Shown: positions 29,176 through 61,032, counted from the first letter of the stretch. The stretch: 64,000 nucleotides of DNA from Octopus sinensis (GCF_006345805.1 NC_043007.1:41044001-41108000); one strand, 5' to 3'. Numbers and translations are program-made. The notes: generated by a model not told the origin, from the letters alone.

Positions 29176-31204
29176 ACTTAAACGTAGGGAGGGAGAAAGA
29201 AAAAAAAAATAAGAAGAACCCTAAACGTAACAGCTAGCGAAAGAAAGAGGGAAGTAAGGGCGGAGAAAAGGAACGCATTGTTTAGGGACGCTACCAAAGT
29301 AATGAATAGGGAGAGAAAGGATACTTTGCGTAAGGAAAGAAAAAAGAAAGAGATAGGTGAGAAAATATGTGTAACAAACGAACACATAAAATGAAATTAC
29401 ATATATATATATTCTGTTGTGTCCGGGGAGAGTCATTTTCTTTTTGTGCCTTATAATTTAACACACTCACCGGTAAAATGACTCTCCTTGGACACAACAG
29501 AATATGCTTCAACACACGAACTCACATAAAGAATCTTGCAAACCAAATCCAAAAACGAAATACACATATGTGTGTGTGTGTGTGTGTGTGTGTACGAGCA
29601 AAACGTCCCCCCGTCCAATGGACGGTGCTAAGTTGTCAAACATTTAAACCAAATTTTCTCAAAACAACTTGTCCGACTGTCCCATAGGCCTCCCCTTTGA
29701 GAAACACTGATTTAACCTAAATTTGAGACAACAGCAAAAGAAGAAATAACGATAGACTTTTTTCTATTCCAAAGAAAAACGATTTTATTCACATAAATAT
29801 GCAACCGAAGAGTTTAAAGTACCAGTAAACGATAAGGATGTTGACTGGGAGAACACAAACACGGTGTAAACAGTAAGCTTGGCAGGAAAGAAACGTGCCT
29901 TTAAGCAGTACAAAAACAGCAAAAAATGGAAGGTGCAGTTATGTACAGGTTGACGGAAGAAAAGCAGAACAAAAACGGTTGTATCGATCGCATTCTTACC
30001 TGGAATCGATTTTTGTAATTTTTTCAAGACTTATACATGCCCTGATACCGTCGGTAACTACATATCAAATTTGAGCGCAATCGGATGGAGGATGCCCGAG
30101 ATCCGAGAAGACACACACAGACAGACAGACAGAATGGATTTTATATAAGATATATATATACACACACACACACACACACACACACACATAAGTATATATT
30201 AGCATATAAATACACAAGATCACGCATATAAATATATAGAAATATGAACGTAAATACATATCCCCACAAATATAAGTGTATACATGCATGCATATACATC
30301 CATGTACATATGTGTACAAGTATAAACATACACGCTTACTTACACATATATACAGATGCACATATACAAATACATATGCATGCCTACGATACAGACATCC
30401 ACATAAAACATACATAGGTCCTAACGTGTATATACAGACAACTTTTTTTTTTAATTGCTGAGTGTATAATAATAAAAATTGGATAAAAGATATGCAAAAT
30501 GGAACACCATATATCGAATTATCTATAAATATAACGATTATTGATCAGACCTCGTATTGCTTTTATCAGTTGCTATCATTGAATAGAGGTAGTAAGCGGT
30601 GAGCTGCTATGATAGTTAGTACGCCGGACAAAATACTTAGCGGCATTTCCTCTGTCTTGACATTCTGAGTTCAAATTCTGTTGAGGTTGACTTTGCTTTA
30701 CATCCCATTCGGGGGTCGATAAAATAAATACCAGTAGAGCACTAGGATCCATGTAATCGACTTATCACCTACCCTGAAATTACTGGCATTGTGTCCAAAA
30801 TTGAAACCCATTATCAAATAGAGGTAGAAGGCGGCGAGTTAGCAAGATCGTTAGCACATGAGGCAAAATTCTTAACGGTATTTGTTCCGACTCTTTACGT
30901 TCTGAGTTCAAATGCCGCCGTGGTTCGCTTTGTTTTTCATCATTTCGGAGGGGATAAGGTAAGTACCAGTTGAGCGATAGAGTGGATGTAATCGACTAGG
31001 CCCTTCACACCACAAAGTTTCAGTCTGTGCTCCAAGAGTAGAAAGTTTCAGATATGCGAGTGCGTAATAAAAAGATACAATGGTCTCTGCTTGAATGGAA
31101 TTCCCCATAGATTTGATTAACCTGTACTGAATTGAGCGAAATCATATCATTATTTTTCGGTTCGTTTTCTCTTCCAGCTCGTCTGATGACTGCCAAAAGA
31201 AAAT

Positions 31205-31373
31205 ATGGAAAAAGATCAAGAGGCGCAATTCAAAATGTGGTCTGCTACAGTCAATGTGGATTATGTTATGAATGGGCTTGGAACGAAAGGTTACTTCCAC
31301 ACATCACAATTCCTGCTCTGGTGTCTCACAGCACTTGTAGCATCAGGCAATCTTAACCTTTACATCTTCAGCG
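31205..31373 (+). CDS. SLC22-like first coding exon, copy 1 (intact)
   Basis: MEKDQEAQFKMWSATVNVDYVMNGLGTKGYFHTSQFLLWCLTALVASGNLNLYIFS + G|gtgagt (phase 1); acceptor cttccag| at 31177. Confidence 0.75.
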
Positions 31374-32479
31374 GTGAGTTTTCAACTGTTACGTCTTCAG
31401 ATTGTGACATCCATCCATTCATCCATCCATCCATACATACATACATACATACATACATACATACATACATACATACATAGTTGTTGAAATTCCAATGAAG
31501 GAGCTTCGGATCTTGGTTAGAAACCGGTTCTTTCTCTATTGACAAAAAACCTTGAAATAAAACTGAAAAAATACATACCTATATACATACATACATGCTA
31601 CATGCAGGTATCAGGCATACATACATTCATGCAGGCATATATATGTTCACACATCCTCACACACACAAACGCGCACACACACACACATACACACACACAC
31701 ACACACACACACACACACACACAAATGAGCAAAGGATTGAAGATGACGATATTACATTTTTAATCAGTGATCATCGTTTCAATAATCGATATAAGTTTTT
31801 TGCTCAAACAACATGCATGCTATGTAAATTCATACGATATTAAATGATATTTCTACTTATCATTCCTTCGAAGTCCCAAAATAACATTGCACTAAGTTAA
31901 AAGACATTCTATGTATACGAATATCTCTTGTATAAACGTCATCTGCTCAAAGGACAACTGGCGAACGCTTTTGTTCGAAAAATAGAGAAATAAATTATTA
32001 TATTTGCCAGGAAACTCTGGATAGCTGTACTTAACAATATTTGTGTTTTTTACTATAACATTATATATATATAATATATATATATATATATATATACACA
32101 CTCACACACATATATACGTGTGTGTATATATGTGCAAAAAATTTTAAAAAAAGGAAAATGCACTCACTTTACATCGGTTTGATTTTTTTTCAGTATATTT
32201 TATATTGTTTGTCGACCGGTTTCGCTTTCACTAATCATAACATTGAAATTATTGTAATTCCGCATTTTCTTAAGAAGATTTTAGTTCATGTTGTGTGTGA
32301 AGTTTGTAAATGAATGATTGAGCAGTTATAAAAATCTAAGGGGATGTAATTGGTGATCGTTATTATTGGGGACAGGAAGATAATTGTTTATCTTTCGGGG
32401 AGGGAATAAATAAGTATATATATACAAAAACTCAAAAGCTAAAGTAGTGAGATGAAACATATACAGTGATGGGTATGTG

Positions 32480-33200
32480 ATCATGAATTAAAATATATAC
32501 TGAGATCAAAGTTGGTTATGCTTTCATATTTAGACGTGTTCTGTATTTTTTCGATGAGCAAATTTTCTTTATTTAAACTTTCTTGTATAGAAATTGTTTC
32601 TTTGCACTGGTAGATGGGGAAAACTGTGAAATTTGATTGGATATTCCCTGCACACATGTCTATGTGTTCACTCAAAGGAATCTGTGTGTATTGAAGGAAC
32701 CAGATCTGTTCCTTGTGTAGTGTGGTTCTCTGTCTCATACTTGTCTGTCCTATATAGTTATGTCCACAACCTGAGCAAGTTATAAATTAGATTCTCGAAA
32801 GCTCAAGTGAAGCTGGTTTTAGTTATGAACCTTTCTCCTTGTTTGAATAGGAATTCCAAGCTTTCCAGTAGGTTGGGGAATGTTCTACAGTTTGGGTGTC
32901 CACATTTTTAAACGTTGGTTTCGTAGTTGTTGTGTAAATTTTCGCATTTTTAGAAGTCTTTTCAACGATTTGTGTTGCTTTTGGCATTTGATGAATTTAT
33001 GTTTTCAGAATGTTGTTCATTTTGGGGTCTCTGGTGAACATAGGTAGATTTTGTACAATAGTTTTGTATGCCACATTGTTTACAGGATTGTGAGTTGATA
33101 TATACAGAAGCGTTTTGAGATGAGGTGTTGCGTTAGGTTTCCTTCACCTTAATGTTTTAATGTCTAATTTCTTTGCACGCTTAATTCCATCGTTTATAAG
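32480..33200 (-). mobile_element. Penelope-like element 3' fragment (GIY-YIG C-terminus)
   Basis: QIPLSEHIDMCA...KENLLIEK, homologous to the GIY-YIG ORF at 44483-44839. Confidence 0.65.
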
Positions 33201-34116
33201 TGACGGCATCTTCAAGACCTCAGAACAACACTAACTAAATGACAATATATTCACCCTCACTTAAAGAAACATACACATACTATTCGTTCTTCACTCCACT
33301 TTTATTGTTTTTCCTATTTTAGTGTCCTATGTCTGAAATCTTTCGTCACACATTTTGTGATCCATTCAACGATTCCTCATCCCATGTGTCTCCTTCTGTT
33401 GTGTTTAGTCCACTCTGTATTTCTGTTGTACATACCCTTATCCACACATGTGTTTGCATCTCTATCTCTGTGTGTGCGCGCACGCGTATCTATAAGTTTT
33501 GTATGTATGTTTTGTGTGTGTATATCTAGGCTTCATTACTTTATTGCTTGTACCCGTGTCCTTTATTTAGTTTCTTTTTTATTTCCTTATTTATTTCTCT
33601 AATTTTGTCTCATTCTGTCTTCGGTATGTAAATGTATGTCCTTGGAGGGGGGAGAGGTTTATGTATTATACTATTTGTATCTTTTTTCTTTTATCTCATA
33701 GCCATCATGCTGTGTAGTTTAGAGGGGAGTGTTAGACTTCCATTCGTGTTTTCTTTTGAAGATTGGTCTGTCTACTCCGATGTGTGTGGCCTCTATAATC
33801 TAAGTGTCGTTTCTGTTCTATGTGTTGATAATACCTTAACAACAGCGCCTCTATGTTCTAATAGAGCGTGTTAGTGGTGCAATGACTATCATTCTTCTCT
33901 TCGGCTACCCCCTAGTATTCACCAATCCGCTCCCCTACGCTACGTTAAGTCACCCCAATGTATGTTGATAGATAGACGCTAAAATGCAGACACAGAGACA
34001 GACAAACTGATAGATAGATAGATAGATAGATAGATAGATAGATAGATAGATAGATAGATAGATAGATAGATAGATAGATAGATAGATAGATTGATAGATA
34101 GATAGATAGATAGATA

Positions 34117-60037: not shown

Positions 60038-60112
60038 ATCTTAGACTGCAGTTTCGCCTTTTTCAGCAATAAAAATAATATTTATTTACTCAGGTAGGCT
60101 CTTCAGTAAGAT
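60038..60112 (-). ncRNA. Canonical type I hammerhead ribozyme
   Basis: ATCTTA CTGAAGA GCCT (loop) AGGC GAAAC TGCA GTC TAAGAT; all core nucleotides canonical. Confidence 0.85.
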
Positions 60113-60436
60113 TCCTGTTATTATGAAGCGCAACTCGATAGACACATGTGCGTCTACTAATTTGCTCTTTCTAACTAATCAGATCACTGCGCAGACGCAG
60201 AACGAACCCGACAAACTAGGGATTTCTGGTATATAGTCTAACGCTCAAAATTTATCGAGAAATATGTAAACAAATTCAAAATGCGATAAAATAAAATTAA
60301 TTATTATCGCTGGTGTTTCTAGCACAGGCCATATATTATTCATATATAAGTACATTAAAGGCGAAGTATGTACTAGAAACACAGAAGCTTGATAAATTTA
60401 GTGAAATGAAGATAAAAACTTTTACTAACTCTGTTC

Positions 60437-60511
60437 ATCTTAGACTGCAGTTTTGCCTTTTTCAGCAATAAAAATAATATTTATTTACTCAGGTAGGCTC
60501 TTCAGTAAGAT
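60437..60511 (-). ncRNA. Second hammerhead copy with G12A mutation (probably inactive)
   Basis: Identical to 60038-60112 except GGCAAAAC instead of GGCGAAAC (C>T at 60454). Confidence 0.7.
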
Positions 60512-60746
60512 TCCTGTTATTATGAAGCGCAACTCGATAGACACATGTGCGTCTATATATATATATATATATATAATCACTATGTCCACCTGTCGGTTAA
60601 TTGGCTCCTCTGTTATCAATTTCGCTGTCTGCCTCGCTATCTCATCACCTCACTATCAAAAGTGGGCTTTTTTTTATCTCTGAACCATACATCCTGTAGT
60701 CATTTGTACTTTGTGTTTGTCGAATCTGTACAACATTGGTCTGATC

Positions 60747-61032
60747 ATGAAGACGTCTAATATTTACATCGACAAGATTCTTCTGCAGCTTGGAAACTTG
60801 GAGTGGTTCAATGTCTCTCAATTCGCCATGTGGTGCTTCTCCACCAATATTATTGTAGGAAAAAGGCGGGGAGCTGGCAGAAAAATTAGCACGTCGGGAG
60901 AAATGCTTAGCAGTATTTTGTCTGTTCTTACGTTCTGTGTTCTAATTCCGCTGAGGTCAAATATTTCGGGCCTTGTACCAAGAGCAGAAAACAATATTAT
61001 TGAAGGAAATTAAAATTTGTTTCTATTTACAG
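60747..61032 (+). pseudogene. SLC22-like first coding exon, copy 6 (SINE-interrupted, in-frame TAA)
   Basis: MKTSNIYIDKILLQLGNLEWFNVSQFAMWCFSTNIIVG[SINE]N*NLFLFT + G|gtaaga; 18-bp TSD. Confidence 0.75.

Follow-up and report, generated by a model that had tools for sequence, protein, structure and literature searches.

How many forms of its first transmembrane helix (TM1) can a single transporter gene offer? The question is raised by a stretch of DNA from Octopus sinensis (64,000 nucleotides, GCF_006345805.1 NC_043007.1:41044001-41108000, lying on CM016869.1 at ~41,044,001-41,108,000; referred to here as the window), in which six exons that appear to encode the N-terminus of a transporter of the solute carrier 22 (SLC22) type are arranged in tandem (31178-61032). 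They were recognized in an initial annotation, which considered that they could form a mutually exclusive or variable-exon cassette, spliced to a shared body beyond the window by the logic of Dscam, UGT1A, and the protocadherins, or else could be the debris of partial duplications. The analysis described herein shows that the arrangement is of a known kind, that of alternative or duplicated exons, here in an SLC22 gene, and that the set of alternative exons is small and partly decayed and is not a large generator of diversity. The best explanation, to which we give about an even chance, is that of one SLC22 gene whose first coding exon was tandemly duplicated and has undergone birth and death, leaving one or two alternative exons and debris. 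A search of the literature for tandem arrays of alternative TM1 exons found none reported, whether in SLC22 genes or in cephalopods.

Six first coding exons ahead of one gene body

All six ATGs (31205, 39253, 45479, 47785, 52581, and 60747) are on the plus strand and open segments of the SLC22 N-terminus/TM1 type, with the common pattern M-x5-(N/D)(I/V)(D/N)xxLxxLG-x4-F(H/N)xSQ-x3-WC-...-F(L/I)F(T/S). In tblastn searches of the window with eight full-length cephalopod SLC22 proteins, the copies were matched at E = 1e-32 to 3e-2, so the array is not a product of chance. The same eight queries detected no other SLC22 coding segments in the window besides the six copies and two C-terminal exons on the minus strand (4-99 and 1666-1806), which bears out the earlier statement that there are no TM2-12 exons between the copies. 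An approximate sequence of human OCT1 used as a query gave only weak N-terminal tblastn matches and was superseded by the cephalopod proteins.

Three of the copies are intact. Copy 1 (31178-31373), a first coding exon of 196 nt that comprises part of the 5' untranslated region (5'UTR), the N-terminus, and TM1, has a strong AG acceptor 27 nt 5' of its ATG and a GTGAGT donor in phase 1. Codon 11 of copy 1 is a further in-frame ATG and aligns with the start of all of the other copies. Copy 2 (39202-39391), a candidate alternative N-terminus/TM1 exon, and copy 4 (47734-47923) are each 190 nt with an acceptor 51 nt 5' of the ATG and a phase-1 GTGAGT donor, and the open reading frame and splice sites of copy 2 are undamaged. 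Out-of-frame ATGs are present in the 5'UTR part of copy 1 (31186-31188, at -19) and copy 2 (39219-39221, at -34). The corresponding upstream ATG of copy 2 in Octopus bimaculoides is in frame and was taken as the start by the gene model.

The other three copies are broken. Copy 3 (45468-45616) is a dead, young duplicate of copy 4, where homology begins just 11 nt 5' of the ATG, the acceptor is gone, and a 1-nt deletion after CTTTCCCA shifts the frame. Copy 5 (52530-52717) retains its acceptor 51 nt 5' of the ATG and is a pseudo-exon in which a 2-nt deletion near the 3' end leaves 137 coding nt and a donor in phase 2, and its conceptual joining to exon 2 leads to stop codons. Copy 6 (60700-61032), also a pseudo-exon, has an acceptor 47 nt 5' of the ATG and a GTAAGA donor and is interrupted, as judged from alignment, by a ~140-nt insertion resembling a short interspersed nuclear element (SINE; 60862-~61002), which is flanked by a target-site duplication (CAATATTATTG[T/A]AGGAAA) and to which at least seven repeat copies in the window are related. 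An in-frame TAA remains even when this insertion is discounted. Judged by their reading frames and splice sites, no more than two or three copies look usable, and three are dead. The initial annotation of the array proved correct in every detail that was checked, from the six exons with their ATGs to the five retained acceptors (exactly 51 nt before the ATG in copies 2, 4, and 5), the GT(G/A)AG donors in phase 1 in the intact copies, and the strong divergence of copies 1, 2, and 4 from each other.

The body of the gene lies just outside of the window. Positions 21205-64000 are 100% identical to positions 1-42796 of L002, the O. sinensis locus, also on CM016869.1, of an annotated protein (P0006, XP_029643217.1). 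Exon 2 is at L002 48700-48906, 5.9 kb past the window end, and it is followed by further body exons at L002 49865, 54340, 58523, 63898, 70416, 75130, and 77732, in one set only. No extra N-terminal copy was found on L002 between the window end and exon 2. The shared body that had been postulated therefore exists in the same assembly, and the count of exon-2 copies proposed as a check gave one on L002, behind the whole array.

Identity of the encoded transporter

A profile built from the six peptides and searched against 1.84 billion representative proteins led to a protein of Octopus vulgaris designated 'solute carrier family 22 member 8-like' (P0001), residues 1-57 of which are 100% identical to copy 1, as are residues 1-57 of its O. 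sinensis orthologue (P0006), so that copy 1 is the first coding exon of annotated proteins in both species. Both proteins carry PF00083 and PF07690. The organic cation transporter subfamily model TIGR00898 was matched at E = 5.5e-67, which is below its curated cutoff, and the best solved structures were all of SLC22 proteins, OCT3 (1.7e-31) followed by OAT1, OCT1, URAT1, and OCTN2. The SLC22 identity of the copies rests on this relationship, because copy 1 is the exact N-terminus of PF00083/PF07690 proteins that match solved SLC22 structures, and the SLC22-like identity originally suggested for the array is supported by it. Judged by sequence, the whole gene encodes a drug/metabolite transporter of the SLC22/MFS type (OCT/OAT-like), and the duplicated exon corresponds to the SLC22 N-terminus and TM1. 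Hydropathy maxima over 19 residues are 1.2-1.8 in copies 1, 2, and 4, and copy 1 aligns weakly (1.6 bits) with residues 5-52 of OCT3. The short copy peptides alone gave no match to Pfam or the PDB. A word-index search with a 46-aa peptide or with concatenated copies also returned nothing and is uninformative, since it missed exact copy-1 matches in the database; the search overlooks the exact 56-residue matches of P0001 and P0006 that its own database contains. In vertebrates, exon 1 of SLC22 genes also encodes the large extracellular loop.

Origin of the copies

A unit made up of the exon and ~2 kb of downstream intron was duplicated in tandem to give copies 3, 4, and 5. The first unit (45468-47773, plus strand) contains copy 3 and its downstream sequence, and the second (47774-52569, plus strand) contains copy 4 and its downstream sequence; both are exon plus intron, 2.3-4.8 kb in size, with no other coding exon inside. 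Their correspondence is seen in collinear self-matches (45938-46332 with 49104-49496, 46329-46778 with 50438-50833, and 46777-46884 with 52310-52417), and a Tc1/mariner fragment (49665-51582), in which the helix-turn-helix domain of a Tc3-type transposase was found (49665-49976), accounts for the larger size of the second unit. That the copies are whole-gene duplicates whose bodies were deleted was considered and is ruled out by these collinear, exon-only units of 2.3-4.8 kb. The array is one of tandem exon duplication, with homologous members on the same strand in one gene and with units that contain only the exon.

The duplications are of different ages. Copies 3 and 4 are 96% identical across the exon, indicating that this duplication is young, while copy 5 is 85-87% identical to both. 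For copies 2 and 6, similarity to copy 4 is confined to the 5'UTR part, the exon, and ~30 nt past the donor, at ~65-70% identity, and these duplications are therefore old. The near identity of copies 3 and 4, together with a mis-oriented block in the O. bimaculoides assembly (see below), would be expected if some copies were haplotigs or contigs mis-joined in tandem. Such an assembly artefact is very improbable given that the O. sinensis array contains no N runs, that copy 3 lacks an acceptor and has flanks only 74-76% identical to those of copy 4, and that the independent O. bimaculoides assembly again has copies 1 and 2 and a copy-4-like exon, with two copies also in Argonauta.

Copy 1 stands apart, as it has no nucleotide similarity to the other copies and at the protein level the N-termini of paralogous octopus SLC22 genes (46-48%, P0003 and P0011) resemble it more than copies 2 and 4 do (30-39%). 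The copy-2 family, on the other hand, resembles the N-termini of the Argonauta orthologues. These affinities indicate that the array is mixed, with a paralogue-like exon at the front and a family derived from the apparent ancestral first coding exon behind it. Copies 2, 4, 5, and 6 have the acceptor at a conserved position, as do the copies of O. bimaculoides, and the retention of acceptors implies that the ancestral unit was an internal exon located behind a non-coding exon. The retained acceptors also fit mutually exclusive internal exons better than promoter-proximal first exons of the UGT1A/protocadherin type.

Splicing logic and a conserved intronic element

In silico, the frame is maintained when copy 1, 2, or 4 is joined to exon 2, and any two copies included in one mRNA give rise to premature stops. 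The usual hallmark of mutually exclusive exons, equal length and phase, is displayed by copies 2 and 4 (190 nt), with copy 1 being slightly longer (196 nt), where all three are in phase 1 between AG and GTGAGT; copy 3, which has no acceptor, and copy 5, in phase 2, do not qualify. According to the explanation favored here, each mRNA would take exactly one N-terminal exon, the phase-1 donor of which would be joined to the single exon 2, and taking two copies at once would shift the frame and generate premature stops and an unproductive transcript. Copy 1, the exon of the current models in this species, is the more paralogue-like type and is located upstream of the rest. Copy 2 represents the older, orthologue-type exon and is probably the second mutually exclusive alternative, copy 4 might be a third, and copies 3, 5, and 6 are dead relics. 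That O. sinensis splices and translates copy 2 (or copy 4), and does so by a mutually exclusive choice, is our inference; copy 1 is used, and as an alternative exon copy 2 is probable and copy 4 uncertain.

An intronic element of 24 nt follows the donors of the copy-2 family. After copy 2 it extends from +7 to +30 (39398-39421, plus strand; core TTTTCCTGAAAATT) and it is also present on the plus strand after copies 3 (45623-45646), 4 (47930-47953), 5 (52724-52747), and 6 (61039-61062); copy 1 is without it. Exact matches to the core number four in the window, all of them just beyond copy 2-5 donors; at copy 6, the site departs from the core by two mismatches. Among copies 2, 4, and 6, the element (core TTTTCCYGAAWATT) is 67-88% identical compared with 61-67% in the coding sequence, and beyond +30 the identity falls to ~20-30%, or 49% for copies 2 and 4, where a TGTA-type microsatellite is present in both. 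Between O. sinensis and O. bimaculoides, 22 of the 24 positions of the copy-2 element are the same, and the 70 nt past the copy-2 donor are 91% identical.

A Dscam-style docking site shared by the elements was considered and dropped as unsupported. Each post-donor element was scanned with RNAduplex against L002 1-48700, the introns past exon 2 being outside of the scan. The best duplex partner differs from copy to copy, at -15 to -19 kcal/mol in the absence of a shuffled control, and a pattern search for docking sites gave two minus-strand sites with two mismatches each, with the total number of motif matches being within chance expectation. A complementary docking site shared by the elements was not found in 70 kb. 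Consequently, the element is read as a shared intronic splicing-control site for an unspecified factor, and its most likely role, based on its conservation and position, is that of an intronic splicing-control element of the copy-2 family.

In a more ambitious reading, the array is a regulated cassette of variable exons providing at least three TM1 variants (copies 1, 2, and 4) according to tissue or condition, so altering the substrate pocket, with the element acting as the selector and diversity maintained by positive selection. The three intact, strongly diverged, and phase-compatible copies, the element common to the copy-2 family, and the contribution of TM1 to the ligand site of human OCTs (PMC9640557) are in its favor. 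Half of the array is dead, however, copy 4 is not open in O. bimaculoides, no docking site was found, and no annotated O. sinensis isoform contains copy 2 or 4. Such a cassette is distinctly unlikely. Somewhat less unlikely, though still improbable, is the broader proposal that octopods exercise a regulated choice of TM1 in SLC22 transporters (copies 1, 2, and 4 here, two copies in Argonauta) and so change the substrate pocket, with the TTTTCCYGAAWATT element as the switch. If true, the solute carriers would gain their first described variable-helix cassette, one maintained from a time before the Octopus-Argonauta split.

Gene models and relatives in other cephalopods

Orthologues of copy 1 and copy 2 are present in O. 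bimaculoides, with protein identities of 84 and 72%, respectively. In that species, isoform X1 (P0008, XP_014773907.2) and an older model (P0023) begin with the copy-2 orthologue, which in both is joined to the orthologous exon 2 (LQTKHQCKNLT...), so that two annotation pipelines made the same connection. The closest relative of copy 4 (L001 18083-18220) has a TGG-to-TGA stop, there is also an inverted copy without an ATG, and a copy-6 orthologue was not found at the syntenic position. Isoform X2 (P0022, XP_052827548.1) begins with an unrelated exon of 49 aa (L001 15496-15645) that is spliced to the same exon 2; it has no TM helix and no counterpart in O. sinensis, and may be cryptic or species-specific.

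The O. bimaculoides locus (L001, on CM046611.1) requires caution. A block of ~32 kb (9891-42173), extending from copy 2 through exon 5, is flipped with respect to O. sinensis and is bounded by scaffold gaps of 100 N (9791-9890 and 42174-42273). An inversion of copy 1 relative to the segment from copy 2 to exon 5 was considered as a biological event and rejected, since the 100-N gaps point to an orientation artefact. With the block flipped, no connection between copy 1 and the body was possible and the model breaks off at exon 5, and the gaps and the flip probably explain why XP_014773907.2 ends at 389 aa and has a copy-2-type start. Exons 6-9 are absent from the L001 locus.

A more distant octopod also has more than one copy. 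The orthologue in Argonauta hians (P0007, L003) has two intact tandem copies (10001-10141 and 11649-11789), both with an AG acceptor and a GTAAGT donor and with 41% protein identity to each other, and a single exon 2 (15418) follows them. One copy is present in a second Argonauta gene (P0009, L004). Relatives derived from Logan (P0015 and P0018) are without N-termini.

All three of the annotated models of this gene appear to be imperfect. That of O. vulgaris (P0001) skips body exon 3, with the stretch WDLICDKTGLAE...GIIND missing, its sister model (P0021) has a C-terminal extension that resembles the helix-turn-helix of a Tc1-type transposase, and the O. sinensis model (P0006) ends early beside an N gap (L002 79376-79475).

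Selection and decay

Whether the intact copies are maintained was addressed by the ratio of nonsynonymous to synonymous substitution rates (dN/dS), and the outcome is divided. Copies 2 and 4 compared with each other give 0.3, with synonymous sites saturated, which indicates that both lineages were long under purifying selection. Between O. sinensis and O. bimaculoides, copies 1, 2, and 4 give 0.76, 0.90, and 0.88, respectively, values not distinguishable from neutral, and TM exons 3 and 4 give 0.16-0.24. Exon 2, which encodes the loop, has 8 nonsynonymous changes versus 1 synonymous change. In the intron stretches that could be aligned, the two species differ at 7.7% of sites and gaps open at 0.69 per 100 nt; copy 1 has diverged by 7.1%. 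Since copy 1 is an annotated exon and both it and exon 2 evolve rapidly, a high ratio alone is not the mark of an unused exon. Copy 2 has a nonsynonymous rate (0.142) above that of the introns (0.077), and this and the 8:1 ratio in exon 2 are compatible with the diversifying selection of the cassette reading, although with so few substitutions such selection and relaxed constraint are inseparable, and the counts are too small to support that reading. The array does not consist mostly of functional units kept by selection.

Several observations weigh against the use of copy 2 or copy 4 in O. sinensis. Their dN/dS values (0.90 and 0.88) are not distinguishable from neutral, and copy 2 has diverged more than the introns (14.5% versus 7.7%; binomial p = 0.005). 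The probability that an open reading frame of 139 nt survives by chance, estimated from the intron divergence, is roughly 0.15. None of the gene models of O. sinensis or O. vulgaris contains copy 2 or 4, and when the clusters at 90% identity around P0001 and P0006 were listed in full, copy-1 forms were the sole members. The copy-2 model of O. bimaculoides may be a fallback that arose from the flipped block. Copy 2 of O. sinensis also has the out-of-frame upstream ATG, though so does the annotated copy 1, and the failure to find a shared docking site belongs here as well.

Taken to their conclusion, these points lead to a different explanation, which is that only copy 1 is used and that copies 2-6 are decaying remnants within a first coding intron of 38.5 kb, the ancestral exon and its local duplicates having become redundant once an exon of the copy-1 type took over. 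It would account for the three broken copies, the stop in the copy-4-like exon and the inverted copy lacking an ATG in O. bimaculoides, the loss of copy 6 from that species, the near-neutral ratios of copies 2 and 4, the evolution of copy 2 at a rate faster than that of the introns, and the annotation of copy-1 proteins alone in O. sinensis and O. vulgaris. Debris is also common in this region, as an orphan SLC22 fragment on the minus strand (4-1806) has a stop at a conserved Arg codon. Less easily explained in this way are the integrity of copy 2 and both of its splice sites in two species, the 91% identity of the 70 nt past its donor, and an element that is better conserved among old paralogues than is the coding sequence. 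The same can be said of the two annotation pipelines that connect the copy-2 orthologue to exon 2, of the two intact, old copies retained by Argonauta, and of the dN/dS of 0.76 for annotated copy 1, which shows that a high ratio is not specific to unused exons. Pure debris is a serious possibility but a doubtful one.

Both proposals of the initial annotation thus survive in part. Debris is true of at least half of the array (copies 3, 5, and 6). The variable-exon cassette is supported in its architecture, with an array ahead of a single body, compatible frames, and two types of copy in gene models. The comparison with Dscam, UGT1A, and protocadherins is overstated, because three of six copies are dead, copy 4 has a stop in O. 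bimaculoides, the dN/dS values are near neutral, and no O. sinensis or O. vulgaris model includes copy 2 or 4; the copy-2 start of the O. bimaculoides model may be due only to the flipped block.

Comparison with known systems

The nearest known logic to that of a single SLC22 gene with one or two alternative first coding exons and debris is found in the gustatory receptor (Gr) genes of Drosophila. At Gr39a, and also Gr28b and Gr23a, alternative homologous 5' TM exons are spliced to a few shared 3' exons, and the exon set changes by duplication, pseudogenization, and loss, with weaker purifying selection on duplicated exons (PMC2204066). The octopus array has the same combination of 5' TM exons, shared 3' exons, and exon turnover. 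The variable exons of the Gr genes, however, are large, encode most of the protein, and have documented isoforms, whereas the variable part in octopus is 46-56 residues with one helix, model support extends to one or two copies only, and the acceptor has been kept upstream.

Equally close are mutually exclusive clusters such as exons 5a/5b of the SCN alpha genes, Dscam1, and the tandem-duplicated exon substitutions of humans. Such clusters arising from tandem exon duplication are enriched in membrane proteins (PMC9741552, PMC5740500, PMC12772994). Like them, copies 2 and 4 have the same length and phase, have their own splice sites, and break the frame upon double inclusion, and conserved intronic sequence lies beside the exons. 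Unlike classical internal clusters, the one in octopus holds the start codon, half of it is pseudo-exons, and pairing of docking and selector sequences was not found. The layout of a 5' array and a constant region is likewise that of UGT1A, the clustered protocadherins, and the sDscam genes of chelicerates, where an array of variable 5' units, of which each transcript takes one, precedes constant exons (PMC4835542). The units of those genes, however, are promoter-proximal, lack an acceptor, and are mostly functional, while in octopus five of six copies have an acceptor, so that the lack of an upstream acceptor that characterizes UGT1A and protocadherin units does not extend, as far as sequence can indicate, to this array, and at most three are intact.

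What an exchange of TM1 might achieve is suggested by human OCT3, in which TM1 faces the translocation path, and by the fact that one of six ligand-site positions that differ among OCT1, OCT2, and OCT3 is in TM1 (PMC9640557). Replacement of TM1 could therefore plausibly change selectivity. If copy 2 or 4 is used, one octopus SLC22 gene would give rise to transporters that differ in TM1 alone, which would amount to a compact natural experiment on the part played by TM1 in tuning polyspecific transport, and a mollusc would provide a case of exon-level diversification in a family that otherwise expands by duplication of whole genes. If only copy 1 is used, the turnover of exons is still visible, with an older type replaced by a paralogue-like one and dated relics left in the intron. 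For annotation, it is relevant that orphan first exons that look intact, and orphan 3' fragments, occur commonly in this SLC22 cluster, where erroneous gene models can arise from them.

Other features of the window

The window is AT-rich (~37% G+C) and filled with microsatellites, and it has many transposon fragments. A reverse transcriptase and endonuclease of a long interspersed nuclear element are encoded on the minus strand at 5150-8762 and a further reverse transcriptase on the minus strand at 54414-55052. The SINE-like repeat family, of ~100-150 nt, has many copies both in the window and at the O. bimaculoides locus, including those at 20141-20237, 22699-22775, 30582-30997, and 52964-53088 and the one that splits copy 6 (60862-61002).

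The two C-terminal SLC22 exons near the start of the window (4-99 and 1666-1806, minus strand), which extend from TM11 onward, have as their nearest paralogue P0011/P0012 (53-60% identity). No upstream exons of this gene were found anywhere in the window, and the junction Arg codon, AG|G in the homologous intact gene, has become a TG|A stop, so the fragment looks like an orphan, decayed 3' part of a gene. In O. bimaculoides, the isoforms of a neighboring SLC22 paralogue (P0011, P0012, and P0013) have one N-terminus in common and end in two different, homologous sets of last exons, which suggests that the 3'-terminal exons of that gene were duplicated in tandem, as a mirror image of the array described here.

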